Positions 28,313-41,909 of a DNA stretch of 64,000 bases are shown here, in pieces. Position 1 is the stretch's first letter, and every line of letters begins with the position of its first letter. The notes beneath the pieces were generated by a model. That model saw only the letters and a list, made by a program, of their open reading frames with translations. It was not told where the DNA came from and made no database searches. The stretch is taken from sequence record NC_042100.1. One strand, 5' to 3'. A program made the position numbers and the translations under genes.

Positions 28313-28318
28313 CAACAT

Positions 28319-28347
28319 ATCCCCTTCCCTAACACAGGGAAGGGGAT
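28319..28347 (+). terminator. Intrinsic terminator
   Basis: ATCCCCTTCCCT-aacac-AGGGAAGGGGAT followed by an AT-rich tract. Confidence 0.75.
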
Positions 28348-28484
28348 AATTATAATTATTTCTTAACTGTATTTTCTATCTTTTTGGGGAGGGGGAGAAA
28401 GAAAAACAAAAAACGATGTCTATTTATTATTTTTAATATATATATATATACCAACAAATCAATTAACCTTTAATAAGGAATAAC

Positions 28485-29453
28485 ATGAAACAGACCAGCA
28501 AACAAATCCTTGATTGCCTTTCAGAAGAAGATAGACTCAAATGGGAAAGAATCGAACAAGAAGTAAAAGGCAAGCTTCACCGAGTAACTGTGGTTTGGTT
28601 ATCCGAACACTTAGGTATCTCACAAAGAACGATAACACGTTTAATCAATACTGTGACTTATCTCACTCCAACACAATGGTTGTTAGATCAAAGATATATA
28701 TCGACCATTAATGTGTTGAAAGACCCTAACTATGATTTAAGTGGTCTACAGGAGCAAGTCGGCTACAAACACCAATATAACTTCTATGATTACTTCCGTA
28801 AGCGTTTTCCCTTTACCTTTCCTGAAATTGCTTACTTACATTCACTTGGACTTTCCAAGGATTTCATTGAAGGTGACTTTGATAACATTGAAGAGTTCTT
28901 GGCGTTTGAAATGATTCAGATGATCCAACGTACTAATGGTAAGATCAAAGTTAAAGAGGATCTTTTAAATTTCTTTGGAGGAAGTCATACTTGGTTTTAC
29001 CGGGTCTGGTATCGCTACAACGGTCCGGAGTCTCCTTCTGAATTTATTTCCTTCACCCGTATTCGGTGGTTACGAAGAGACTTCTTGGAAAGCAACACCA
29101 CACCGAATGAATACTTCTTAAAGAACAAGTTAGGCTCCCATAATGTGGACTATACCCATAAAGTTCACTACGGGATCACTTTCCGTGCTTGGGCGAGTAA
29201 ACAGATAGAAGGTAAACCACGTCGTCGCAAAAATGGGTGCGATGAGCTATTAGGTGAGGAGTGGTTAGAGCGCATCAAACAACATATTACATATCGAGAA
29301 ATCGACATAGAGACCATCTCTAAGAAAGTAGGGTTATCCACCCAAGCGATGCGTAAGGTGATTACGTACTATTGTAAGAAGACGTATTTTGACTTTAAGT
29401 GTGAGGTACTCGCTTCCAAACAATCAAATCTAACTGTCAGGTCTTATGTATGA
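28485..29453 (+). CDS. AraC/XylS-type multi-HTH DNA-binding protein
   Basis: VTVVWLSEHLGISQRTITRL..TPTQWLLDQR....L.....LQEQVGYKHQYNFYDYFRKRF is a full AraC HTH pair; a second degenerate copy and a third partial copy (IETISKKVGLSTQAMRKVI) follow. Confidence 0.75.
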   Translation: MKQTSKQILDCLSEEDRLKWERIEQEVKGKLHRVTVVWLSEHLGISQRTITRLINTVTYLTPTQWLLDQRYISTINVLKDPNYDLSGLQEQVGYKHQYNFYDYFRKRFPFTFPEIAYLHSLGLSKDFIEGDFDNIEEFLAFEMIQMIQRTNGKIKVKEDLLNFFGGSHTWFYRVWYRYNGPESPSEFISFTRIRWLRRDFLESNTTPNEYFLKNKLGSHNVDYTHKVHYGITFRAWASKQIEGKPRRRKNGCDELLGEEWLERIKQHITYREIDIETISKKVGLSTQAMRKVITYYCKKTYFDFKCEVLASKQSNLTVRSYV

Positions 29454-29477
29454 CGATAATTCAAAAGGAAACTTATC

Positions 29478-30002
29478 ATGTTAATAGTAAACACCGACGG
29501 GTCTTGTGTGGGGGAATCCGGCGCAGGTCCTTCGGGTTACGGGATAGTTATCCGTGATGGTGACGTGGTTATTGAGCTAAGTGCTGGATATAAACGCTCC
29601 ACCAACAACCGGATGGAGATGTTAGCCACCATAGTGGCGTTAGAAGGACTACCTGAGCGTCGTAAGGTGTCTGTCACAACTGATTCCCAGTATGTCAAAC
29701 AAGGTATCGAACAATGGATACATGGTTGGCGCAGACGTGGGTGGAAGCGCGCAGACGGTGGTCCTGTTAAAAACGTAGATCTATGGAAACGTTTGTATGC
29801 AATGACACGTTACCATAACGTCACTTGGAACTGGGTTAAAGGTCACTCCGGCGATCCAGATAACGAACGTTGTGATACGCTAGCGCAAGACGCTGCCCGT
29901 AACCGAGCCACACTGGAAGATGAAGGGTACTTCACTTTCAATGAAAACCTACCTAAGTTCACCCCAGATAAAAGCCGACAATGGTGGAGACGAAATCGAT
30001 GA
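29478..30002 (+). CDS. rnhA: Ribonuclease HI
   Basis: TDGSC, TNNRMEM, TDSQYV and [15 protein letters not shown]; all catalytic D/E/D/H/D residues present. Confidence 0.96.
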
Positions 30003-30319
30003 TCGACATGACTGAGTCCAAGGAAATCCTTAAAAAGATCAAGGTAGCTTCACAAAAACCCCACCAAGATATGACTCCTTTGGAAGTGAGTGAGTTTAAC
30101 ACTAAGATTTTGCAACACCCATTGGTGGTTGGTGTCGTTCGAGTGAACCTCATGACGGTACCAAATTACTCACCATATTGTGGGGGATTCTCCGAATGTG
30201 ATCAGATGCCTAGGACTCATTACGAAAGGGGACAATTCCAATGTCCGACTTGTGGTTGGCGTAGTAGTTTTCCTGAGGAGTTTATGGGTATGTATCGTTA
30301 TCATTGGGGACTCGATTAA
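29999..30319 (+). CDS. Small Zn-ribbon-like protein
   Basis: ATGA overlap with the rnhA stop; YCG...C..MPRT...QFQCPTCGW. Confidence 0.6.
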
Positions 30320-30322
30320 AGT

Positions 30323-30340
30323 AGAGGGTTAACACCCTCT
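30323..30340 (+). terminator. Intrinsic terminator
   Basis: AGAGGGT-taac-ACCCTCT followed by CTTTATTTTT. Confidence 0.7.
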
Positions 30341-30381
30341 CTTTATTTTTGCGTATCAAATAAAAGTTTAAGGATTAATCC

Positions 30382-30873
30382 ATGAAATTCAATTCAGACT
30401 CGACCAAAAGCAAAGTGGATAAAGGTTATGTCTCCGTTGATCTGGCGTATTTTCAGTGTGGTCGTTTAAGAGAACTAGTGACCAATCACGGAATCAAACC
30501 TATCGACGATGGCGACTTTCACGTCACTATCGCTTATGATAAAGAGTTGATAGATAACACCCTTGAAATAGACATCGATAAAAACCGTTTATACGAAGCC
30601 AAGGTTATCGGTGTGGAACTAATGGGTGAAGTTAAAGACGGGTTACAGTCAGCGGTAGCACTGACCTTAGAATCAGAAGAATTAGTGGAAGAACACTTTA
30701 AGTGGATGGCAGCTGGTTATGAACACGGTTGGCCTGAATACATCCCTCACATGAGTGTGGCTTACGACGTACCCGTTAAAGATAGCGAACGTTTGGTTAA
30801 AGCGTTAGAACCTTACATCGGTAGAACGTTCTATTTCGTTAACCTGTCAGCAGAACCTGTAAACAATAATTAG
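30382..30873 (+). CDS. acb1: 2H phosphoesterase, anti-CBASS nuclease Acb1 (T4 57B)-like
   Basis: Two HxT/S motifs (FHVTIAY, IPHMSVAY). GYVS, AVALTLESEEL..H, GYEHGWPEYIPH and a C-terminal EP match the T4 Acb1 layout. Confidence 0.8.
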   Translation: MKFNSDSTKSKVDKGYVSVDLAYFQCGRLRELVTNHGIKPIDDGDFHVTIAYDKELIDNTLEIDIDKNRLYEAKVIGVELMGEVKDGLQSAVALTLESEELVEEHFKWMAAGYEHGWPEYIPHMSVAYDVPVKDSERLVKALEPYIGRTFYFVNLSAEPVNNN

Positions 30874-30882
30874 GAAAACAAC

Positions 30883-31527
30883 ATGAGTAAAAGAAATAAG
30901 GGTGAACGTCGCGGTGTTCAGCTGAGACTACGTCAATCCCGTCGAGAGCGAGCCAACCGACACACCATGGCGATGGCGGTCAAAGACATTAGCGAACACC
31001 TTTACTTCTTTGGTAGTCACGCTCATCAGCTAGATACCATTGATTGGTCCCCTAAACTAAAACGTTTATCAAAAAGAAGAGATCAAGAAACCGCCATTGC
31101 TAGTATCATCTCTCTACTATCAGAGTCTCGAGCTTGGCAGTTATTCTTTTTCATTGGGATTGATACCGGTGAGGAAGTCGAAGTCTTTTCTTTCTTAGAA
31201 ACGATTAAAAAGACCAACTACATGACAGCACCTGAACAATTCGCTGAAGTCATAGACGAATACGTTCAGGAAGTACAGTCCGTTATTGATGAAGGTGGTG
31301 AGTTCAAAAACACTCAGCTGTCTCCTCATCACAAAATATGTGGGTTTGGTTATTACTTGTTTTATTCCACAGATTACAACTTAGAGGGTCATGAAGATGA
31401 GATCTCGGATTCCCTCCATGACGCCGGTGTATTCAATACGCCATTCGATAGAAACAATTACCTGCGTTTAGAACATAAGCATTTCTCTGATATGTTTAAA
31501 CGCCAAGAACTCCGTATTAAGGATTGA
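30883..31527 (+). CDS. Hypothetical protein with Arg-rich N-terminus, 214 aa
   Basis: SD AGGA; basic N-terminus MSKRNKGERRGVQLRLRQSRRER. Confidence 0.7.
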   Translation: MSKRNKGERRGVQLRLRQSRRERANRHTMAMAVKDISEHLYFFGSHAHQLDTIDWSPKLKRLSKRRDQETAIASIISLLSESRAWQLFFFIGIDTGEEVEVFSFLETIKKTNYMTAPEQFAEVIDEYVQEVQSVIDEGGEFKNTQLSPHHKICGFGYYLFYSTDYNLEGHEDEISDSLHDAGVFNTPFDRNNYLRLEHKHFSDMFKRQELRIKD

Positions 31528-32675
31528 TCATGAATCATTTTATTAAAGCTTTAGAACACGTTGTGCACACCAGTGAACATACCCTAGGGGAAGTTGTTAA
31601 ATACGGTTGGTCTTACCAATTTGATTTAATCCAAGAAGGGATGTTACCTCAGTGGTCTGGTATCGTGGAATTGCCCGCGATTAAACCGGCGCTTGCAGAA
31701 CTGGATTGGTTAATCAACAACCAAGGTGATCTAACCATTTTGCATGACGCTGGGCTACATCACCACGATTACCTAGAGTTTGAGCAAGACTTGACTTTCA
31801 CCAAACAGTACAAGTTCGAAGAACGCTGCACACTTGCAACGGAACGTTTCCTTGAAGCCGGTTTGATCGTGCAAGGCGAAGAAGGTCTAAAAGGTGCTTT
31901 CCTCGACAACGGGATGATGGACCGTCACCTTACTGTCGATAAATGTATGGCGGCGATGGGCATCACTGAAGCTCGCGAAGAAACCGTGGGTAAAGAAGGC
32001 GGCATTGGTCCTTGTCACGGTTTGGCTTTCAAACAACCGACCAACACAGGCACGATATTATTCCACCACCCGGATTACCTACCGGACCCAGAAACTCCTA
32101 TCCAAGAAGGTCTAAGTGAAGGTCGTTACTCGTACATTCCAAAACAGATCATGATGACGTTCCTAACGTCTGAGGTTCCTTTAGAAGAACGTGCGTTGCA
32201 ACTTAAAGACCCGAAAGCTTCAGCGTTGTTGGCGGCTTTGCTGAAAGAGGAACCGTTTGAACGATTGGTGGAGTTAGGGTTTAAATACCCTAAAGAAACT
32301 CACGATAACGTGGAGCGCATTGAATTAATCCAAGACTTGTTTAATGGTCACGGTATCCCGAGTAAGCGCCTGCACACCCGTTTAACCCTCGGAGACTTCT
32401 CTCCGCTGAAAGAATACATGACTGAGTTGTTACCGTACATGATCTATTCGGAGTACGTGGCGCACAAAATCAATGCGGAAAACACGACATTCACAGTAGA
32501 CGCTAACCAGTTGATCTTGGACAAAGAAACATTAGCTATGTTAAACACCATCGTTGAATCCGATCAAGATTGGACGAAACCTGCAACCGTTAAACTCCTT
32601 CGTCCTTACGATATGAGTTTGACTCAACCCATTACTGAACAAGAACTGGAAATCAAAAACTATTCCGGTTTGTAA
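31524..32675 (+). CDS. Thymidylate-synthase-fold protein, catalytically degenerate
   Basis: Retains the TS scaffold (FDL..G.LP, ELDWLI, GIGP.HG, HPDYLPD, GRYSYIP..MMTF), but the catalytic PCH reads PKQ; DRTG, QRSxD, N and HxY motifs are absent. Confidence 0.7.
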   Translation: MIMNHFIKALEHVVHTSEHTLGEVVKYGWSYQFDLIQEGMLPQWSGIVELPAIKPALAELDWLINNQGDLTILHDAGLHHHDYLEFEQDLTFTKQYKFEERCTLATERFLEAGLIVQGEEGLKGAFLDNGMMDRHLTVDKCMAAMGITEAREETVGKEGGIGPCHGLAFKQPTNTGTILFHHPDYLPDPETPIQEGLSEGRYSYIPKQIMMTFLTSEVPLEERALQLKDPKASALLAALLKEEPFERLVELGFKYPKETHDNVERIELIQDLFNGHGIPSKRLHTRLTLGDFSPLKEYMTELLPYMIYSEYVAHKINAENTTFTVDANQLILDKETLAMLNTIVESDQDWTKPATVKLLRPYDMSLTQPITEQELEIKNYSGL

Positions 32676-32687
32676 AAATAACTCAAG

Positions 32688-32705
32688 TCTATATTACTTG
32701 GGTGT
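32688..32705 (+). promoter_or_regulatory. Putative early promoter, copy 2
   Basis: TCTATATTACTTGGGTGT, 42 nt upstream of groEL. Confidence 0.8.
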
Positions 32706-32747
32706 GTATACCACTAATTAACTTAACCTTTTAACGAGGAATCAATA

Positions 32748-34307
32748 ATGCTTTACCTAACTAAAGAAACCAAACGAATCCGTACTGAAGCTGTAATGGA
32801 AGTGACATCAGCCGTTACTTCTACTATGGGGCCAGAAGGGAAAGTGGTGGTTTGTGATAAAAACGGTATTCCGTTCCCAACCAAAGACGGGGTGACCGTA
32901 GCAAAAGCATTGCGCTTTGAAGACCCGTCTAAAGACATGTTCGCCACTATGGTGGCGGAATGTTGTTTGCGCACGGATAAAATCTGTGGTGATGGAACGA
33001 CAACCACCGCGTTCCTATTAAACAAAATCTACAGTCGTTTTAACCACCTCATTTCATTCAATACCAAAAAGCTGTTGCGTGAATACACCCAAGAACTCGT
33101 TGGTTACCTCAATGAACTATCCACCAAAGTAGATGTTGAGTCTGACTTATTACGTCAAGTAATGATGACGACCAGTAACAACGACGAGCGCATCGTCAAC
33201 AAAGTGTTGGAAATCTACCGTGATAACCCACATTTACCTGAGTTGTTATTCAAAGAAGCAAACGACGATCAAGACCAAGTGCAAGCAAGTCATGGTTGTT
33301 CTTGGCCGGGTGGATTTGCTTCTCCTGAGTTTTCAACGCTCGGTAACGGTGCACCAGAAGTGTTCATGGAAAACGATGGTTATCGACCTATCTTAGTGTC
33401 AGGTCGCATCGATGGCTTGGATAACGAAGAAGCCGTTTCTAAGTTCATTGAGTACACTCGAGAGTACGTTGAAAAAGGTGGGACTTATCTCATCATGGGA
33501 CGTAGTATCGAAAGTGTAACCGAACAAACTTTGAAAACGTTCAACTCTAAGTGTGGTCGAGTAGCATATAAAGCGGTCGTACTTCGTGCGGCAGGTAGTT
33601 CGGGTGTTTCCATCATGAACGACATTGCAACGGTGTTAGACGCTAAGATGCACACTCAATTGGTGGAAGACCATCCTGAGTATCGTGTTCCGAAAGATTA
33701 CCCAATTGCACGTATTACAAGTGCAGCGGTTTCCTTTGCTGGATCAACATTGACACATAAAGCGTCTTTGGACAAAGCTATTACTAACGTTCAAAACGAA
33801 CTGAAAGAACTGAATGTGGACCAACGTCATTCAGCCTTAGGTAAAATCATCGAACATCGTCTTCGTATTTTGTCAGGCGGAACGGTTACTTTGTATGTCG
33901 GCGGCATCACGGAATCTGATATCCGTGAACGCATTGGTCGCTTTGAAGACGTAGCGCGTGTTTGTGTCTCAGCGTTGTCTAACGGTGTCTTGCAAGGTTG
34001 TGGTTACTCGTTGATCCTAGCAGGTAAGAAACTAGTAGCGAAGCACCCAGAGTGTGAGATCGTGGAGGGGTTATGGAGTGTCCTAAAGAGTCAATCTGAA
34101 TATCTGATGTTAACAGAGTACAAGGATGGGATGATTTACACTAACTTAGCAACAGGCGAACAAGGTACAGAGCCGGGTAAGTTAGGAGTTTGGGATGCGG
34201 CACTGGCAACCACCACAGCGTTAGAAGCCGCAACTTCTATGGCGATTACGTTAATGGATTCAGAAACCCTTATCCTTAACTCTCGACTATCTGAAGTACG
34301 CTTCTAA
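32748..34307 (+). CDS. groEL: Phage GroEL-like chaperonin
   Basis: STMGPEG, TKDGVTVAK, GDGTTT, LSGGTVTLYVGGITE, RFED (catalytic Asp), LQGCG and GVWDA. Confidence 0.93.
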   Translation: MLYLTKETKRIRTEAVMEVTSAVTSTMGPEGKVVVCDKNGIPFPTKDGVTVAKALRFEDPSKDMFATMVAECCLRTDKICGDGTTTTAFLLNKIYSRFNHLISFNTKKLLREYTQELVGYLNELSTKVDVESDLLRQVMMTTSNNDERIVNKVLEIYRDNPHLPELLFKEANDDQDQVQASHGCSWPGGFASPEFSTLGNGAPEVFMENDGYRPILVSGRIDGLDNEEAVSKFIEYTREYVEKGGTYLIMGRSIESVTEQTLKTFNSKCGRVAYKAVVLRAAGSSGVSIMNDIATVLDAKMHTQLVEDHPEYRVPKDYPIARITSAAVSFAGSTLTHKASLDKAITNVQNELKELNVDQRHSALGKIIEHRLRILSGGTVTLYVGGITESDIRERIGRFEDVARVCVSALSNGVLQGCGYSLILAGKKLVAKHPECEIVEGLWSVLKSQSEYLMLTEYKDGMIYTNLATGEQGTEPGKLGVWDAALATTTALEAATSMAITLMDSETLILNSRLSEVRF

Positions 34308-34319
34308 TTATCACTAATG

Positions 34320-34343
34320 TGTGGACTCCTACGGGAGTCCACA
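34320..34343 (+). terminator. Intrinsic terminator
   Basis: TGTGGACTCC-tacg-GGAGTCCACA followed by a T-rich tract. Confidence 0.8.
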
Positions 34344-34407
34344 TACTTTAGTATTTTATTTTTTAAGGTAATTTATCAACGTCCTCCGGTTACCGAGGGA
34401 TTGAGTT

Positions 34408-34568: not shown

Positions 34569-35048
34569 ATGAATTGGTTTAAACGCTTTATTAAACTCAA
34601 AGTAGCGAAAAAAGAAATCCAACGACTATGGGTTTTAGAACAACGCATCCGAGACATGGAAGCATGGTTATCTACGGAACCTAAGTTAGTGCGCGCTGCT
34701 GAGTGGTTAAAAGAAAAAGACAACCCGAAATCGATCTCGGACTTTCGAACTCAGTTTGAAGCAGAGTTTGGCAGTGGTCGTACGACACCACATAGACAAC
34801 AAGCAAACTCCCCTAAACGTAGTGTCCCAAACCAAGCACTAAGAAACAACCCATCCCGCACAAAACACGACCAAGAACACCTCGGGACTGTAGTGACTCA
34901 ACATCAACATCATCACTACCACGATGAGAGTACTTACCACTCCAATACTCGAAGTGAATGTGAGCGTTCACCTGAACCAACTCCTGTTCGCGACGAACCG
35001 TCTAGGTCTTGTAACGATCAATCAAGCATGGACACGTCTTATGATTAA
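34569..35048 (+). CDS. Hypothetical protein with low-complexity His/Ser-rich C-terminus
   Basis: SD AAGGA; helical N-terminus and disordered tail (QHQHHHYHDE). Confidence 0.7.
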   Translation: MNWFKRFIKLKVAKKEIQRLWVLEQRIRDMEAWLSTEPKLVRAAEWLKEKDNPKSISDFRTQFEAEFGSGRTTPHRQQANSPKRSVPNQALRNNPSRTKHDQEHLGTVVTQHQHHHYHDESTYHSNTRSECERSPEPTPVRDEPSRSCNDQSSMDTSYD

Positions 35049-35343
35049 CACGGAAATGGTTTTTAGTAGGTTGGGATTAAAGGGTGCCTATGAGGTACTC
35101 AATAACGACCGTGACTTATTTCGTATAGTGATGATTATCACTATTGGTAACGTCTTCCATGTTTGCGGGCTTCCTTCAGTAAAGGGAGGGTTAGCAATAG
35201 GAGTGTTGTATGGTTTGGTGACCGCTTCCTTTGTCACACGACCTTACGAACCAGATGGCGATTGGTTTACCATGGGAAGAATCATCGGGTCCTTTATAAT
35301 GGGCTTGGGTATTTGGCATTTCTTGGATTGGGTGATATATTGA
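35041..35343 (+). CDS. Small multi-pass membrane protein (100 aa)
   Basis: Start moved to ATG 35041, which overlaps the upstream stop; about three hydrophobic segments. Confidence 0.6.
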   Translation: MINTEMVFSRLGLKGAYEVLNNDRDLFRIVMIITIGNVFHVCGLPSVKGGLAIGVLYGLVTASFVTRPYEPDGDWFTMGRIIGSFIMGLGIWHFLDWVIY

Positions 35344-35480
35344 ACAAAACAACTTATTGGGTCTTGAATTGTCTCGGAGCCTTCGTCTTTGCAGGAGTGA
35401 TGGTGATGGGTCTCATCATTGCTCCTTTCTTTTTTATTTATCGACAACTAACTAAAACGAAAAAGGCAACACATGTCTAA
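35340..35480 (+). CDS. Small single-pass membrane protein (46 aa)
   Basis: TTG start overlapping the upstream TGA; YWVLNCLGAFVFAGVMVMGLIIAPFFFIY followed by a basic tail. Confidence 0.45.
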   Translation: MNKTTYWVLNCLGAFVFAGVMVMGLIIAPFFFIYRQLTKTKKATHV

Positions 35481-36127: not shown

Positions 36128-37312
36128 ATGAAAGACGTAAGACAAATGCTCATTAATCGAATGAGTGAAGTCCATATCCGTAATGCGATGGAAACAGGAG
36201 ATCCAGCTAAAATAGAACAAGCTAACACGTTGTTTAAAGACCTGTTAGTGAGTGAAGTAACCATAAGTAACATCGAAGAAGTCGGTCGTGGTACTCAACG
36301 TTACCGTGCGGATATCGATCTTAGCCAACGTGGAGGTTCGGTGATCAAGCAGTACTGGTCGCCAGCTAATCCCACCGAGGCTTTAATCGAATTATACGAA
36401 ACGGGAGAATATTCTCAGAACGGGGATAACGTGACCAAAATACGTCTGAGTAGTAAAGCCGTGTTCCTACATTACTTTAATACTCATGATTTGATGACCC
36501 TGACCACGACTGGTTATTTGTCTCAAACTGAACTTGAGACCCTTTTCCCTTTTGATCCTCAAGACGTGCGTGTACAAAACTTCGGCGACTACATCAATTT
36601 TGACGGTCCTTTCATCAGTGGTCGCATGATAGTGCGTGATGGTAAAGAAGGGATATTGACCGGGACCCACGACCCGGTGGATGTTCGTATTTGGACAGAA
36701 GATGAGAACGGGGATAAGGAAGTGGTGTTGGATGACATGAACTACTTCCCGGTTGGTCATAACGTGGATACTAAGTTCCGCATTTATCTGGAGGACTCAC
36801 CGGATTATCAAAGCGGTGACACGTTTACGGTTTCTTATACTGGAGACTACCGACCTCTTGAAAAAGACACCCTAACCTATCAACAAGGTCAACCTTTAGA
36901 GATCCCTACCGATGAACGAATGGTGCCTGGACAAATTATCCAGTTCACTATCACTGGTAAGGGTGGTTTTAGTTGTATGGTGAGTGGTGTTGTGGTGATT
37001 GCGCACGCTTACACCTATACTCCAGATGGACGCATAGATATAGAAGTTACTTACCCTGAGGTTATCACTGGCAGTTTGGTGTTTAAGGGTAAACCCGAAC
37101 AAACGTGGCATGTTCCTGAGGACGACCAGCCACCTGGAATGTACCTCTACGATCGTGGGCGTTTCGTGCACTTCGTTCCTATGGACGACACCACACTAAA
37201 CGACTTTGAACTACCTTTACTTGAGCCTGGAAAATACGGAATGTACTTCCGTTCACCGGGCAGTTATAAGAATACCTTTGGAGGACTTTTGACGGTTAAC
37301 GCCCCAGAATAA
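36128..37312 (+). CDS. Putative virion protein, N-domain paralogous to the 1508-aa protein, beta-rich C-terminus
   Basis: RQMLI..GDPAKIEQA..F..L...EV...WSP aligns with the N-terminus of 37383. Confidence 0.6.
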   Translation: MKDVRQMLINRMSEVHIRNAMETGDPAKIEQANTLFKDLLVSEVTISNIEEVGRGTQRYRADIDLSQRGGSVIKQYWSPANPTEALIELYETGEYSQNGDNVTKIRLSSKAVFLHYFNTHDLMTLTTTGYLSQTELETLFPFDPQDVRVQNFGDYINFDGPFISGRMIVRDGKEGILTGTHDPVDVRIWTEDENGDKEVVLDDMNYFPVGHNVDTKFRIYLEDSPDYQSGDTFTVSYTGDYRPLEKDTLTYQQGQPLEIPTDERMVPGQIIQFTITGKGGFSCMVSGVVVIAHAYTYTPDGRIDIEVTYPEVITGSLVFKGKPEQTWHVPEDDQPPGMYLYDRGRFVHFVPMDDTTLNDFELPLLEPGKYGMYFRSPGSYKNTFGGLLTVNAPE

Positions 37313-37382: not shown

Positions 37383-40300
37383 ATGATGAAACATATTCGA
37401 CAAATCCTGTTGGACAAAACCGCACTGATTCGAATCAGTTATGCTGAGTCCCAAGGTGACCCGGCGGAGATCGCTTTAGCTAAATCCCGCTTCGACGGTC
37501 TGATGGACGACGAGGTCCAGTTTCTAAGTATTAAAGAACGTTATGAAGGTGCCGGTACCTTCATCGGTGAAATCAAGTTAACTGGTCGTGATGGTTTTGA
37601 ATTCGTTCAAGAATGGTCTCCCGGTGACACCGTCCCGGTATTGAGTAAGAAAGAACGCATTAAGGTCCCTAACCTAGAAGTATTTCGTAATATCGTTATT
37701 CCTGGACTTTATTACGTGGAAGATATTGCCGAACTATGTTTGGTAGTAAAAGAGTCCATGTCAATTCTGGATATCCAGAAACTATTAGGTTTTGAATTTG
37801 ACCCAGGTGAACTAGAAGTTCGCTTGAGTCATTTAAAGGTACAGTCTCCTATCGTGGACGGCACGTTACCCCTTAAAACAGTGACACCTAATCCAGACGG
37901 TACTATGACTGACGGGACAGGTATTAATATTACGGACTCTTCCGTTGAAGGTAATATTTTGCCAGCCAACCCATACGCCCCTACTCAATACATTACTGTG
38001 GAACGAGTAGGTAGTGAACCGGTAATGTCGGCAGAAATTGATAAAGCTTTTAAAGCTGAATTCGTTGGCACGTACCGTCAAGGTGAGATCATCGAAGGGA
38101 CTCTAGGTGAAGATAACACTTTCAACTTAGACTTGGACCTTAAGAATCAACAAACCGACGATTTACAGATGATCGTTTCTGTAGGTCTAGACCGTGATAA
38201 ACTTACCGATGTTTACTCAGTCACTTATATTGACGAACATTGGACTATTGGTGAAGTTACCACACCAGTAGAGTTAACTCGTGTTGGACACCCTTTCCGT
38301 ATTGCAGGTCATGTGGTCGGGGACTTTGGACGCACACCTTGGGGTGACGAACTCCATGAACCTAAGATCATCATTGAAGAAGTTGATCAAGAACCGGTTG
38401 TGGTTCAATTCGACACAAACGGGATGTTTGATATTCAACACACCCCAGTAGTGGCGGGTGACATGACCATTAAATTTGTTTGTGGTCTTCCTCAAGATCT
38501 GAACGTATTCTCTGAAACACATCAGATCCTTACTGCATTGTCAGTCGACGATCTCGTCTTAGGTCCTTTGACTGCGGATAAAACCGAAGTAAGAGCTGAT
38601 GAGTTAGTCACACTGACCAGCACACTGCGTTCATCAGACGGACTAACCCTTACCGATACCCCAGTGGACTTTATCGTTGACGACCAAGTAACCAGTCAAC
38701 TATTCGCCTCTCCGGAAGGTGTATTAGAACACATTTACGATGTAGAGAACGATACTCTGGATCCCGTAACTTACGCTGTTAAATTACGACTTGGTGCCGA
38801 TGAGAGCAATGTGATTACGATTACGGTTCAACCATCTGATCAAGTCCCTGGTCGTTTTGAAATTATCAACGACCAAGGTGAGTTATTTAAAGAAGGTGAG
38901 TTGCGCTTCCGTATTTACGACACGGTAGATCGTCCTATGGTCGGTACTAGCGGTACTTGGTTCCGTGAAGGTGGTGCACCTAAAGCTTACGCTGTGGACG
39001 GTGAAGAATACGTAGCTACGCTAGATTCTCCGGTTGACGTTGAAAACACTGTGGTTGAATCAATCACATTAAAATGTCAATCACTAGAAACCCCAGTAGA
39101 CTTCACCTGGAATTTGGTTCGTCGTTTCGATGAAGTGTTCTTAGAACCTGATAACCCAACGACTGGTGTAACTGACGACACCATTACCTTAACAGGTAAA
39201 ACCTTGGACCAAATCGATGACCCAGTGGGCAATGTTCCATTAGTGTTTAAAACTGATGGTCTTAAGGTCTCTGACATCACATCCAACGAACTGGGTGTGT
39301 TCAGTGTGGAAGTAAGTGAGACTGATGAAGCGGAACATCTATATTCGTTTATTGGTGAGAACGATATCGGTGCTTCTTTAGCAGTAACCTGGGCAAAAGT
39401 TCACCAACTAACTTCTATTGACTTGACTAGCCCTACTACAGTAAGTCTCTTTACTGACGAAACCTTCCAGGTTACCGGTAGACTGTTGGATCAGTATTCA
39501 GAGAACCTAGTAGGTGAAACTGTGACGTTAGAGTTCCCTGACGGTTATACTGAACAACAAGTTACAACCGAGTCAGGCTTTAGCTTCACAGCGACTTACC
39601 GTGATAACGGTTCCCTATCACACACCATTAACGTTAAGGCTGGAGAGTTCACCACCCCAATTAATGTGAATTGGGAAGTTAAGAGCGAACCTATCATCGC
39701 TAACCTTACCGTAGTTCCTAATACGGTAGACATTGGTGAAGATTACACCGTGACTGGTGAAATCGAAGTCAACTACCCTCACGATTGGTCAAGCACTCGT
39801 GTTGCTATCACCAACGATGCAGGTGAGACAACTAACGTGACTTGTGCGACTGATGGCACGTTTACTTATACCGGTACTGCAAGTGCGCAAGGAACCCACC
39901 AGATCAGTGCTGATGCTGTGGACGTAGTAACACCTGAAGAAACCATCACGTTAACTGTTCGTGAACCTCGTGTCCCGACCGCTATTAACGTTCTTAACCT
40001 ACCTGAGAGTGCAAATACTTTTGAAGGTCAAACCGCTACTATTACAGGTAACGTACTAGATCAAGAAAGTGAAGTCATTGATACTGAAGTCACTGCAACC
40101 CTTGACGGGACACCATTGACCAACACCGCGGTAGAACCTGGAACGTTCAGCTTTGACGCTACTCACGACGGTGTGGGTACCGCAGTGATGACCATCAGTG
40201 CTGGTGATGTCACACGTGACGTAACAATCACATGGCGTGCAGTCACTTACGAATTCACTAACGTTAAGATGTTAGAAGAATCCGTACTTCAGGGAGAAGC

Positions 40301-41909
40301 GTTTGGTTTCCAAGGTACCTTGTTCAGTGAAGGCGGTGGTAACGTAGCCGGTAAGACTATCGAAGCATTAGATAGTTCTAACAACCCATTGACTACCGTG
40401 GTTACTGAACCTGATGGTTCTTACTCTGGTACTTACACGTCTAACACCCCTGGCGCGCTGGCGGTTAAATTCCGCTACGGCACAGTGGAGAGCGGGCAGT
40501 ACACAGTTATCATCCGCGAGATCATGGTTCCTACTACGGTTTCAATCAACACTGATCCTAAGACTTCGGATATCAACCAATCAGTCACTTTCGCCGGTCT
40601 AGTTAAAGACCAGAAAGGTAACATCATGGTTGGTGTGTTAGCTGAGCTTAAAGAGGGTGACACAGTACTGGCTTCTCAGGAAACGTTGTTCAATGGTCGC
40701 TTTAGTATCGATCACACTGAAACAGATGCGGGTGTTAAAACTTACACTGTTAAAGTTGGTGATGTTACTCACGACATCCAAGTCACTTGGGTTGACCCTA
40801 ACTTAGTTACGGCAATCAATCAAATCGCACCTATCGATAACGATGTGGTAGCAGGTGAAGAGCTTAGTGTGACAGTAGAAATGTTGAACTCTTCAGGTGG
40901 CGTGGTTTCAAGTAAAGAACCAACGTTTACTTACACCGGTGTAGCGACTCCGACTCAAACTGGTAATGTGTTCACCATCACTGAAACCGAAGCGGCAACC
41001 GCTACCTTGACGGTGAGTGCGGACGGTGTAGACCTTCCAATCGAACTAACGTGGGTAGCGCCTCCGGCAGTCTACAGTACTATTGAAGTAGTTTCAGGTG
41101 AGACAACCGGTACAACCGGTGAAACGGTTCCTGTTAAGATCGTAACTAAAGACCAGAACGGTGATCCGATGCCTAACCAAGCGGTTACTTGGAATACCGG
41201 TGGTGCACCATTCCCAGTTAGCTTTACTGACGGAAACGGTGAACTTACGTTCAGCTTCAGCTCTGAAGATGAAGGCGCAGTAACGTACAACTTCAGCGGT
41301 GGCGGTGGTGTGACAGGTACATCTCACACGATCACTTGGTCAGACCCGGCTCCAGTTTACAGTGCTATTGAGTTAGTGTCTGGTGGAACCTCTGGTGAGG
41401 TCGGCACGCCGGTAGAAGTTGTGATTCGTACCGTGGACCAAAACGGTGAGGTAATGGGTGGTCAAAACGTTGTTTGGAACACTGGCGGTATCCCGTTCCC
41501 ACAACAAACATCGGATGCCCAAGGTCTACTCACTTTCAACCTTAATGCGGACGAAGCTGGTGATGTCACCTACAACTTCCTGGGTGGTGGTAACGTGACT
41601 AAACTTAGCCACACTATCACGTGGTCTGAACCTACGCCGGTCTACACAGGCATCGACGTTCAACATGGTAATCTAGATGTCGCAGCAGGCGAAACAGTAA
41701 CCTTCACTATCACTACTCTTGACCAGAATGGACAACCAATGGATCAAGAACAAGTGGTGATGTACGACGGCAACATGACTTGGCCGGCTCGTACCTCTAA
41801 TCTAGAAGGTGTGGTCGTGTTTGAGTTTACGGAAGCCGAAGCTAAGAGTGTGACCTACGCCTTCCTAGGTGGAGACGATCGTAAAGAGTACACCGTAACT
41901 TGGAGTTAA
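37383..41909 (+). CDS. Large acidic virion protein with tandem Ig-like (Big_1/invasin-type) domains, 1508 aa
   Basis: About a dozen ~95-aa beta-sandwich units (G.T.T..G...DQ.G..V.N..V.......T...G.F.......G...Y...). Confidence 0.85.
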   Translation: MMKHIRQILLDKTALIRISYAESQGDPAEIALAKSRFDGLMDDEVQFLSIKERYEGAGTFIGEIKLTGRDGFEFVQEWSPGDTVPVLSKKERIKVPNLEVFRNIVIPGLYYVEDIAELCLVVKESMSILDIQKLLGFEFDPGELEVRLSHLKVQSPIVDGTLPLKTVTPNPDGTMTDGTGINITDSSVEGNILPANPYAPTQYITVERVGSEPVMSAEIDKAFKAEFVGTYRQGEIIEGTLGEDNTFNLDLDLKNQQTDDLQMIVSVGLDRDKLTDVYSVTYIDEHWTIGEVTTPVELTRVGHPFRIAGHVVGDFGRTPWGDELHEPKIIIEEVDQEPVVVQFDTNGMFDIQHTPVVAGDMTIKFVCGLPQDLNVFSETHQILTALSVDDLVLGPLTADKTEVRADELVTLTSTLRSSDGLTLTDTPVDFIVDDQVTSQLFASPEGVLEHIYDVENDTLDPVTYAVKLRLGADESNVITITVQPSDQVPGRFEIINDQGELFKEGELRFRIYDTVDRPMVGTSGTWFREGGAPKAYAVDGEEYVATLDSPVDVENTVVESITLKCQSLETPVDFTWNLVRRFDEVFLEPDNPTTGVTDDTITLTGKTLDQIDDPVGNVPLVFKTDGLKVSDITSNELGVFSVEVSETDEAEHLYSFIGENDIGASLAVTWAKVHQLTSIDLTSPTTVSLFTDETFQVTGRLLDQYSENLVGETVTLEFPDGYTEQQVTTESGFSFTATYRDNGSLSHTINVKAGEFTTPINVNWEVKSEPIIANLTVVPNTVDIGEDYTVTGEIEVNYPHDWSSTRVAITNDAGETTNVTCATDGTFTYTGTASAQGTHQISADAVDVVTPEETITLTVREPRVPTAINVLNLPESANTFEGQTATITGNVLDQESEVIDTEVTATLDGTPLTNTAVEPGTFSFDATHDGVGTAVMTISAGDVTRDVTITWRAVTYEFTNVKMLEESVLQGEAFGFQGTLFSEGGGNVAGKTIEALDSSNNPLTTVVTEPDGSYSGTYTSNTPGALAVKFRYGTVESGQYTVIIREIMVPTTVSINTDPKTSDINQSVTFAGLVKDQKGNIMVGVLAELKEGDTVLASQETLFNGRFSIDHTETDAGVKTYTVKVGDVTHDIQVTWVDPNLVTAINQIAPIDNDVVAGEELSVTVEMLNSSGGVVSSKEPTFTYTGVATPTQTGNVFTITETEAATATLTVSADGVDLPIELTWVAPPAVYSTIEVVSGETTGTTGETVPVKIVTKDQNGDPMPNQAVTWNTGGAPFPVSFTDGNGELTFSFSSEDEGAVTYNFSGGGGVTGTSHTITWSDPAPVYSAIELVSGGTSGEVGTPVEVVIRTVDQNGEVMGGQNVVWNTGGIPFPQQTSDAQGLLTFNLNADEAGDVTYNFLGGGNVTKLSHTITWSEPTPVYTGIDVQHGNLDVAAGETVTFTITTLDQNGQPMDQEQVVMYDGNMTWPARTSNLEGVVVFEFTEAEAKSVTYAFLGGDDRKEYTVTWS
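41061..41906 (+). repeat. Three tandem 285-nt (95-aa) Ig repeats
   Basis: P..VY..I....G....GETV...I.T.DQNG..M....V.WNTGG.PFP units start at 41061, 41346 and 41631. Confidence 0.9.

Follow-up and report, generated by a model that had tools for sequence, protein, structure and literature searches.

What does a protein with the fold of a thymidylate synthase (TS) do for a phage once the residues that make TS an enzyme are gone? TS is among the most conserved enzymes and a classic drug target. The question is raised by gp167, a gene of Vibrio phage Aphrodite1 (NC_042100/MG720308; 237,722 bp) whose product is listed in RefSeq as 'hypothetical protein'. The window analyzed here is the final 64 kb of this genome, and window positions are obtained from record positions by subtracting 173,722. 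Aphrodite1 is a member of the Gorgonvirinae. Its genes include a nuclear-shell protein, a PhuZ tubulin, and multi-subunit RNA polymerases, which together identify it as a nucleus-forming jumbo phage. From the comparisons below, we consider it very probable that gp167 is derived from TS, lacks TS activity, and is functionally maintained.

A preliminary description of this DNA had reported an intact open reading frame (ORF) of 383 amino acids at 31524-32675. The frame (+ strand) is indeed uninterrupted, but the length did not hold. The start is likely ATG 31530 rather than TTG 31524, given the AAGGA at 31519-31523 and the TGA of the preceding gene, gp166, at 31525-31527, and RefSeq agrees. The resulting protein has 381 amino acids (43.4 kDa, isoelectric point 4.9). 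Residues are numbered here on this protein; the numbers of the preliminary description are higher by 2. The Shine-Dalgarno sequence falls within the 3′ end of gp166, whose TGA ends 2 bases before the ATG, which makes translational coupling of gp167 to gp166 plausible. The mapped parts of the gene are as follows.

31519-31523, + strand: Shine-Dalgarno sequence AAGGA, 6 nucleotides 5′ of ATG 31530 (read from the sequence).
31530-32675, + strand: gp167, a putative pseudo-TS of 381 amino acids, with its stop codon at 32673-32675 (RefSeq start, PHROG 26020, hhalign, fold).
31785-31994, + strand: insertion 1, an enlarged 'small domain', residues 86-155 (merged alignment, hhalign).
31887-31964, + strand: the segment of highest conservation in the family, residues 120-145, FLDNGMMDRHLTVDKCMAAMG (conservation profile).
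32007-32027, + strand: GPCHGLA, the equivalent of the TS motif GPVYGxQ (hhalign, merged alignment).
32079-32138, + strand: insertion 2, the LPDP loop, LPDPETPIQEGLSEGRYSYI, common to jumbo-phage TS.
32139-32147, + strand: P-K-Q, replacing the P-C-H nucleophile motif (BLASTP, hhalign, residue table).
32175-32363, + strand: insertion 3, helical, residues 216-278 (merged alignment, hhalign, conservation profile).
32424-32426, + strand: codon of Glu299, at the position of ThyA Asn177 (hhalign, residue table).

The TS scaffold of gp167 is detectable by profile or fold methods only. It had been described as recognizable end to end, and by hhalign and by fold it is, but the Pfam TS model PF00303 is silent even at E 1, for gp167 and for three relatives alike. 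The NCBIfam TS models gave no match, nor did PDB sequences at E 10. The only family library match of gp167 is PHROG 26020, a family of unknown function, which covers its full length (E 1.9e-199, residues 3-383, profile positions 1-386). Against 50,697 phage genomes, tblastn recovered orthologues from related jumbo phages of Vibrio and Photobacterium and, at E 5e-5, the annotated TS of Serratia phages Sureiya and Yubaba. The Serratia jumbo-phage TS is a genuine one (Pfam 4e-59; E. coli ThyA 9e-41) that bears three insertions. Pairwise BLASTP joins it to gp167 at 1e-11, with the LPDP loops aligned and PKQ set against PCH, which is where the preliminary description had placed the lost nucleophile.

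We then compared an alignment of 12 gp167-family representatives with 19 TSs. By hhalign the two sets match at 98.8% probability (E 7.6e-17) over 293 columns across both proteins. Insert-bearing jumbo-phage TSs alone give 98.1% (E 1e-13), with the alignment running through the insertions, whereas canonical TSs alone give just 68% (E 5e-5). All three insertions of the jumbo-phage enzymes line up in gp167, both in a merged MAFFT alignment and in hhalign. Insertion 1 lies between HHHD, the equivalent of WDEW, and the GxxGxxHG motif; it is common to insert-bearing jumbo-phage TSs, and the gp167 version is ~11 residues longer. Compared with E. coli ThyA, insertion 2 adds 13 residues. Its presence bears out the jumbo-phage-style insert first proposed, but the literal pattern LPD..P.....G...P is unmatched and the true string is LPDPETPIQEGLSEGRYSYIP. 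Insertion 3 is also found in jumbo-phage TSs and has the lowest conservation within the gp167 family.

The family is small and sharply bounded. When 1.84 billion representatives were searched exhaustively with a HMMER profile, nine clusters at 50% identity came back, all below 1e-30, and nothing between these and the 1e-3 cut-off. This gap indicates that no intermediates with catalytic residues were among the sequences searched. Family members of known source all come from nucleus-forming jumbo phages that infect Vibrionaceae. A scan of IMG/VR for relatives found just the four phages already known, and a family-profile scan of metagenome contigs found none. The ESM Atlas feature search gave top scores for gp167 of 0.58 or less, which is noise, and no recorded structure.

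Structure prediction led to the same fold. The AlphaFold2 model from the merged alignment has a predicted local distance difference test score (pLDDT) of 93.2 and a predicted template modeling score of 0.85. In the Foldseek comparison that had been suggested as a check, the top 50 PDB matches of this model are thymidylate synthases without exception. VIA-align superposes it on M. tuberculosis ThyA with Z 21.4 and a root mean square deviation of 2.6 Å (226/258 residues, model residues 1-381), and the fold match to canonical ThyA (PDB 4foa, 1f4c) has Z 21 and 2.6-2.8 Å over ~226 residues. A model built from 4 family sequences alone is poor (pLDDT 54.6) and was used solely as an unbiased check on the fold; its top matches are still TS only, at E 4e-4. 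The BFVD model of the 2 TSL-2019 orthologue, an independent prediction, superposes with a template modeling score of 0.87, and the viral BFVD matches ranked next belong to jumbo-phage TSs, among them those of 201phi2-1, Aeromonas D3, and several Erwinia phages. Among AlphaFold DB clusters the named entries are all TS or DHFR-TS, with about half of the 30 rows nameless. T4 gp42 is a marginal match in the BFVD comparison, at rank 30. As modeled, gp167 keeps the whole α/β fold of TS with its large central sheet.

How much of the enzyme is left within this fold? E. coli ThyA numbering was carried over to gp167 by HMMER alignment. Among 45 TS-invariant columns, the gp167 family keeps 14 and has altered 31. 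Those kept are structural Gly, Pro, Trp, Tyr, and Ala residues, Trp61 among those retained, together with Glu58, a residue of the general-base network that is present in 11 of the 12 members. The nucleophile Cys146 is replaced by Lys205 (Lys in 9/12, Asn in 3/12, Cys in 0/12) and His147 by Gln206 (Gln in 11/12). Arg21 corresponds to Glu16, which varies across the family; Arg166 and Ser167 correspond to Gly288 and Asp289, both variable, and Asp169 to Ser291. Asn177 is replaced by Glu299, which is invariant in the 12-member family. His207 and Tyr209 have become Ile and Asp, and the positions of Asp205, His207, and Tyr209 are unconserved. Tyr94 is replaced by His163, and of the folate contacts Trp80 has become His or Arg and Trp83 Leu.

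The reported loss of the phosphate-binding Arg and of the RSxD, Asn, and HxY motifs is thus borne out residue by residue, and it goes further than first described. The 22-residue helix-loop DQ...DSRR that carries Arg126 and Arg127 is deleted in 12/12 members, so that all four phosphate-binding arginines are gone, two of them by this deletion. The C-terminal lid, IKFPIAI, is also missing. Two further features go beyond the preliminary description: an invariant Glu where ThyA has Asn177, and a small domain that is conserved. One cysteine deserved a closer look. Cys162, in GPCHG, aligns with Val93, beside Tyr94, and was considered as an alternative nucleophile. It was rejected, as Aphrodite1 alone has Cys here among the 12 representatives and the other 11 have Ser, Gln, or Asn, and on this alignment the pseudoenzyme reading stands. 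Canonical TS chemistry in gp167 is excluded as far as sequence goes. Judged by its sequence, gp167 would be a pseudoenzyme in the operational sense: it has TS homology, it has lost essential residues, and it appears to be under purifying selection.

The evidence for selection starts from two pairs of phages. Nei-Gojobori estimates of the ratio of nonsynonymous to synonymous substitution rates (dN/dS) are 0.067 for Aphrodite1 and USC-1, at dS 0.20, and 0.036 for PDCC-1 and 2 TSL-2019. The ORF is intact in every lineage (376-431 amino acids) despite saturated dS, and no relative has a frameshift. In marine-metagenome contigs of near-identical strains, gp167 is free of indels and differs at three sites only, two of them synonymous and the third replacing Val by Ile. 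These data argue that gp167 is under purifying selection and functionally maintained. Near-identical Aphrodite1 strains with an unbroken gp167 frame are also present in 2024 marine-metagenome runs (X1-X5), with 57-73% of the sampled words of window 30300-34400; strain differences there cluster at third codon positions, in the 5′ part of GroEL (32798-33200).

Maintenance does not mean slow change. gp167 is the fastest-diverging conserved gene of its neighborhood, as amino acid identities between Aphrodite1 and pTD1 show.

gp167 (pseudo-TS): 30%
gp166: 44%
Acb1-like phosphoesterase: 55%
GroEL: 58%
RNase H: 76%
thymidine kinase: 83%
gp027 (second TS): 91%

The last entry, gp027 (record 29872-30780), is the intact thyA that was to be looked for elsewhere in the genome. 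It matches PF00303 at 1e-53, and the RTG, Cys, RSxD, Asn, and HxY elements are present. Its best NCBIfam match, at 375 bits, is the 283-position ThyA model NF002498, which we take to be the Vibrio-type model. Its closest relatives outside the group are in Vibrio siphophages, at ~57% identity. gp027 occurs in every phage that carries the pseudo-TS, and can cover dTMP (deoxythymidine monophosphate) synthesis in these phages, to judge by its sequence. Across related phages its identity is 91-96%, against 29-47% for gp167. gp027 has Met at the His147 position (P-C-M) and Gly at that of Arg127, and an HD-domain phosphohydrolase, gp026, lies directly 5′, the pair being at record 29082-30780.

Where did gp167 come from? 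The Aphrodite1 genome holds two TS-fold genes only, ~175 kb apart; insert-bearing TS queries match gp167, and a canonical TS query matches gp027. Pairwise comparison of the two proteins detected no similarity. An origin of gp167 as a recent duplicate of gp027 was rejected on these two grounds, the lack of pairwise similarity and the match to insert-bearing queries. In a maximum-likelihood tree a stem longer than 2 substitutions per site sets the gp167 family outside all sampled TSs, a placement subject to long-branch effects, with the gp027 branch also long. Because these long branches make the tree uninformative, kinship with the jumbo-phage enzymes rests on the insertions held in common and the scores between profiles, together with positional evidence that is weak. 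The positional evidence comes from OBP-type phages, where TS, DHFR, a ClpP-like gene, and GroEL form a run on one strand. In this run the active TS is found 5.7 kb upstream of GroEL, the orthologue of the Aphrodite1 chaperonin gene. The Aphrodite1 annotation has neither DHFR nor ClpP. The Aphrodite1 chaperonin (32748-34307) and OBP GroEL (L012:13923-15176) are homologous, with 29% identity (E 1e-49). On the sequence evidence, gp167 is probably a descendant of the insert-bearing ThyA of phiKZ/OBP-like jumbo phages.

The former active site has not simply eroded. Seven altered columns on the base and folate side are re-fixed in at least 75% of members (W80R, Y94H, W98F, L143Y, C146K, H147Q, and N177E), while columns of the phosphate and ribose sites vary within the family. 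TS-invariant columns have a mean family conservation of 0.61, against 0.46 elsewhere (Mann-Whitney p 0.001). Conservation peaks at residues 120-145 (FLDNGMMxKHLTLxxCxxAxG), with Asn127, Thr135, Cys139, and Gly144 invariant; the codon of Cys139 is at nucleotides 31944-31946. These residues lie in insertion 1, whose site is presumably that of the small-domain insertion of L. casei ThyA, on the folate side of the cleft. Such a pattern would be expected of a cleft used for a purpose other than binding deoxyuridine monophosphate (dUMP) and folate, and would fit a pure scaffold less well.

The genes around gp167 give a setting for such a purpose.

30323-30340, + strand: terminator-like hairpin 5′ of a putative four-gene unit (consensus scan).
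30382-30873, + strand: Acb1-like 2H phosphoesterase, first gene of the putative operon (Pfam PF23474, E 1.4e-15; PHROG 755).
30883-31527, + strand: gp166, 214 amino acids, PHROG 24995 (function unknown), directly 5′ of the pseudo-TS.
32748-34307, + strand: phage GroEL-type chaperonin, directly 3′ of the pseudo-TS in every context examined.
34318-34345, + strand: terminator-like hairpin with a 12-bp stem, just past GroEL (consensus scan).

The Acb1-like protein, labeled 'RNA ligase' in RefSeq, has two HxT/S motifs (FHVTIAY and PHMSVAY) and is likely, from its sequence, a cyclic-nucleotide-degrading counter-defence enzyme. Its gene holds the same place in the gene order of locus L014. gp166 directly precedes the pseudo-TS wherever upstream DNA exists. 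It has a conserved Arg/Lys-rich stretch in its N-terminal 25-30 residues and evolves fast, and could possibly be a partner of the acidic pseudo-TS; an NCBIfam search placed it in no recognizable family, and the ESM Atlas feature search was uninformative. The two hairpins bracket 30382-34307, which suggests that the four genes form one transcription unit. Between 30341 and 34317 the consensus scan found no terminator-like site except a weak one within GroEL. Matches to sigma-70 promoters are below shuffled expectation (10 vs 15). Nucleus-forming phages like Aphrodite1 transcribe with their own RNA polymerases.

The order RNase H, small ORF, Acb1-like gene, gp166, pseudo-TS, GroEL, and later thymidine kinase recurs in pTD1, VP4B, phiKT1028, and a Logan contig. 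The most divergent members keep parts of it: locus L013 has the pseudo-TS followed by Cpn60, and locus L015 has a gp166-like gene ahead of the pseudo-TS.

Three further features of the region lie outside this unit. Between GroEL and thymidine kinase RefSeq has two tiny ORFs only. Longer ORFs at 34569-35048, 34924-35343, and 35163-35480 (+ strand), including one of 159 amino acids with a His-rich tract and a hydrophobic one of 139 amino acids, are conserved at the protein level (68-92%) in USC-1 and PDCC-1, and may be unannotated or mis-annotated genes. Farther downstream, gp172 (36128-37312, + strand) is 98% identical to its counterpart in Photobacterium phage PDCC-1 and only 44% to that in USC-1, and the start of gp173 (37383-41909, + strand) is 100% identical to PDCC-1 against 77% to USC-1. 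Since USC-1 is otherwise far the closer relative of Aphrodite1, with flanking genes at 97-99%, the gp172-gp173 block looks like a recent recombinational swap, as these identities suggest. Finally, a hairpin at 28318-28348, a near-perfect GC-rich palindrome of 13-14 bp (TATCCCCTTCCC...GGGAAGGGGATA), lies just 5′ of an AraC-type helix-turn-helix gene (28485-29453) and scored as a terminator on both strands.

What might gp167 do? Our best explanation as a whole, which we regard as evenly balanced between right and wrong, is a dead TS re-used as a cleft binder in a setting of host takeover or counter-defence. Acquisition of the Vibrio-type ThyA, gp027, would have made the ancestral jumbo-phage TS redundant and probably freed it from catalysis. 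The gp167 lineage would have lost the linked DHFR, and the catalysis-free protein would have been kept and re-used as a non-catalytic binding module. In the old pocket, the phosphate and ribose half would have decayed, and the base and folate half would have been re-fixed with polar residues (His78, Arg/His79, Asp80, His163, Tyr202, Lys205, Gln206, and Glu299). The adjoining small domain would have been enlarged and is now the most conserved segment. The cleft may then bind a new partner, either a small non-phosphate ligand, possibly cationic or amino-bearing, or a peptide. A role in host takeover or counter-defence is proposed because of the apparent co-transcription with the Acb1-like phosphodiesterase, gp166, and the phage GroEL. 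Taken by itself, the proposal that gp167 is a non-catalytic binder using a remodeled cleft is tentative, somewhat short of probable. It is mildly favored by the former active-site positions, which are re-fixed with new residues rather than drifting. A narrower version makes gp167 a counter-defence binder of a host immune signal or metabolite. The signal, such as a cytosine or uracil cyclic nucleotide of the Pycsar/CBASS type or another amino-bearing small molecule, would be sequestered through the base-side cleft, with its invariant Glu at the Asn177 position, and the enlarged small domain, alongside the Acb1-like phosphodiesterase. In so specific a form we think it highly unlikely.

Several points weigh against a re-used cleft in such a setting. 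The high-confidence AlphaFold2 model was built with an alignment containing real TSs. That the re-fixed residues and the small domain would share one cavity is argued through the ThyA alignment and the textbook structure. The new site would be only part-fixed, as Lys205 is Asn in 3/12 members and His163 and His179 are not invariant, and the invariant Cys139 within the insertion leaves scope for new chemistry. As for the setting, the terminators of the operon are consensus-scan predictions, and the shared gene order spans the whole co-linear region of close phages, which makes it weak evidence for functional coupling.

Other functions would use the same scaffold differently; the preliminary description had put forward a dominant-negative heterodimer, a sponge or decoy, and a scaffold as candidates. 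ThyA is an obligate dimer in which each active site needs two arginines of the other subunit. gp167 could thus be a poison or regulatory subunit that pairs with host ThyA or with gp027 through the β-sheet dimer interface; the heterodimer, lacking the donated Arg126′ and Arg127′, would be inactive or re-tuned, and the phage would control dTMP flux. A catalytically intact ThyA is always co-encoded, a PDB R126E mutant is among the structure matches, the model keeps the long sheet strands with the Arg126/127 helix-loop wholly missing, and dead paralogues that regulate active ones have a precedent (PMC3663545). We nevertheless judge this unlikely. A fixed partner interface should slow divergence, and gp167 is at 29-47% identity where gp027 is at 91-96%; gp167 is no recent paralogue of gp027, having no detectable pairwise similarity to it, and the genes are ~175 kb apart. 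A role at the interface only would also leave the re-fixed cleft and the conserved small domain unexplained. In another reading gp167 would be a new enzyme, in which the TS fold has acquired a different catalytic centre for a different substrate, with Cys139 or a cluster of His78, His163, His179, Glu57, Asp80, and Glu299 as candidates. Glu299 and Cys139 are invariant, His78 and Asp80 nearly so, old active-site positions are re-fixed, and Glu58 is retained in 11/12 members. In T4 gp42, a deoxycytidine monophosphate (dCMP) hydroxymethylase, the altered base specificity comes from an acidic residue in the place of Asn177. Yet Lys205, His163, and His179 differ from member to member, the family changes far more quickly than enzymes encoded in the same genomes, and Pfam, NCBIfam, and PDB sequences matched no other enzyme family. 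We know of no TS-superfamily chemistry without an equivalent of Cys146 and the phosphate-binding arginines, and a new enzyme too seems improbable to us.

Proximity to the chaperonin invites a different reading, in which gp167 would serve the neighboring phage GroEL as an adaptor or cofactor, or depend on it as an obligate client. Alternatively, it would be a scaffold within a complex for nucleotide synthesis or virion assembly, and the cleft would not matter. The pseudo-TS and Cpn60 are adjacent in every context, the most divergent member included, and the active TS of OBP-type phages lies upstream of GroEL on the same strand. This adjacency may, however, be plain inheritance of gene order. 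Polar residues newly fixed where the active site used to be are not what a scaffold would lead one to expect, and gp167 is not among the RefSeq structural labels; we find this group of roles decidedly unlikely. Least likely of all, to the point of being barely credible, is that gp167 is still an active TS or hydroxymethylase through another cysteine, such as that of GPCHG, or else a decaying pseudogene. Cys162 does align beside the position of Tyr94, a residue lining the active site of TS, but the other 11 representatives lack it, and nothing remains of the phosphate-binding residues, of the folate contacts, or of the C-terminal lid. The high divergence of gp167 would suit decay, but dN/dS values of 0.04-0.07 and ORFs that stay intact in every lineage despite saturated dS argue against it.

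The case bears on how far a highly conserved enzyme fold can be put to a new, probably non-catalytic use, here in a giant Vibrio phage. In a full-text literature search we found no natural ThyA-fold protein that lacks the entire catalytic apparatus yet is under selection, and no description of gp167 or of any TS pseudoenzyme. The gp167 family would be a clean natural conversion of an enzyme into a non-enzyme, probably following acquisition of a second ThyA, and PHROG 26020, until now a 'hypothetical protein', has been assigned a fold and an evolutionary origin. The Acb1-like phosphodiesterase, gp166, the pseudo-TS, and GroEL form a candidate host-interface module of four genes that is open to the existing Cas13 and antisense knock-down tools for nucleus-forming phages. 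If gp167 were a poison subunit or a sponge, it would reveal a novel means of blocking or exploiting the TS scaffold; if it were a counter-defence binder, it would be the first known case of immune evasion by a derivative of thymidylate synthase.

Among known systems, Tad1, Tad2, and Acb2 are phage sponge proteins for nucleotide signals. gp167 resembles them in having a small-molecule-binding fold and in being a fast-evolving gene near an anti-CBASS-type gene. The likeness is an analogy of working only: there is no sequence or fold relationship, and gp167 is without the TS phosphate-binding residues that would favor nucleotide binding. The dCMP hydroxymethylase T4 gp42 and the phage dUMP hydroxymethylases belong to the same fold superfamily as gp167. 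dCMP hydroxymethylase has Asp at the Asn177 position, which Glu299 recalls. The hydroxymethylases keep the Cys nucleophile and the phosphate-binding arginines, however, whereas gp167 has neither, and they match it much more weakly than jumbo-phage TSs do.

In trypanosomatids, a dead paralogue of deoxyhypusine synthase is a regulator of the active metabolic enzyme (PMC3663545). As with gp167, selection retains a dead copy of an oligomeric enzyme beside an active one in the same genome. Unlike that pair, gp167 and gp027 come from different TS lineages, are unlinked, and evolve at very different rates, and a hetero-oligomer of the two is only hypothetical. Canonical ThyA (EC 2.1.1.45; E. coli, M. 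tuberculosis, and gp027) has in common with gp167 the fold, the structural Gly, Pro, and Trp residues, Glu58, and Trp61. Its Cys146, the four phosphate-binding arginines, Ser167, Asp169, Asn177, His207, Tyr209, Trp80, Trp83, and the lid have no counterpart in gp167, and sequence-family searches miss the protein.

The closest counterparts are the insert-bearing TSs of jumbo phages (OBP gp234, Sureiya 01330, and Klebsiella N1M2). They are the best match of gp167 by sequence, profile, and structure, in structure together with those of 201phi2-1 and Aeromonas D3, and are of similar length (~392-396 amino acids against 381). gp167 has the same fold and the same three insertions: a small-domain insert that starts with an E-R helix, the LPDP loop, and a helical insert that follows the strand of the nucleophile. 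Like the jumbo-phage TS genes, gp167 has a phage GroEL gene downstream of it in the same orientation. The jumbo-phage enzymes keep every TS catalytic residue and match PF00303 at 4e-59, whereas gp167 has lost these residues. Relative to them, gp167 has the Arg126/127 helix and IKFPIAI deleted, and its small-domain insert is longer and fixed.

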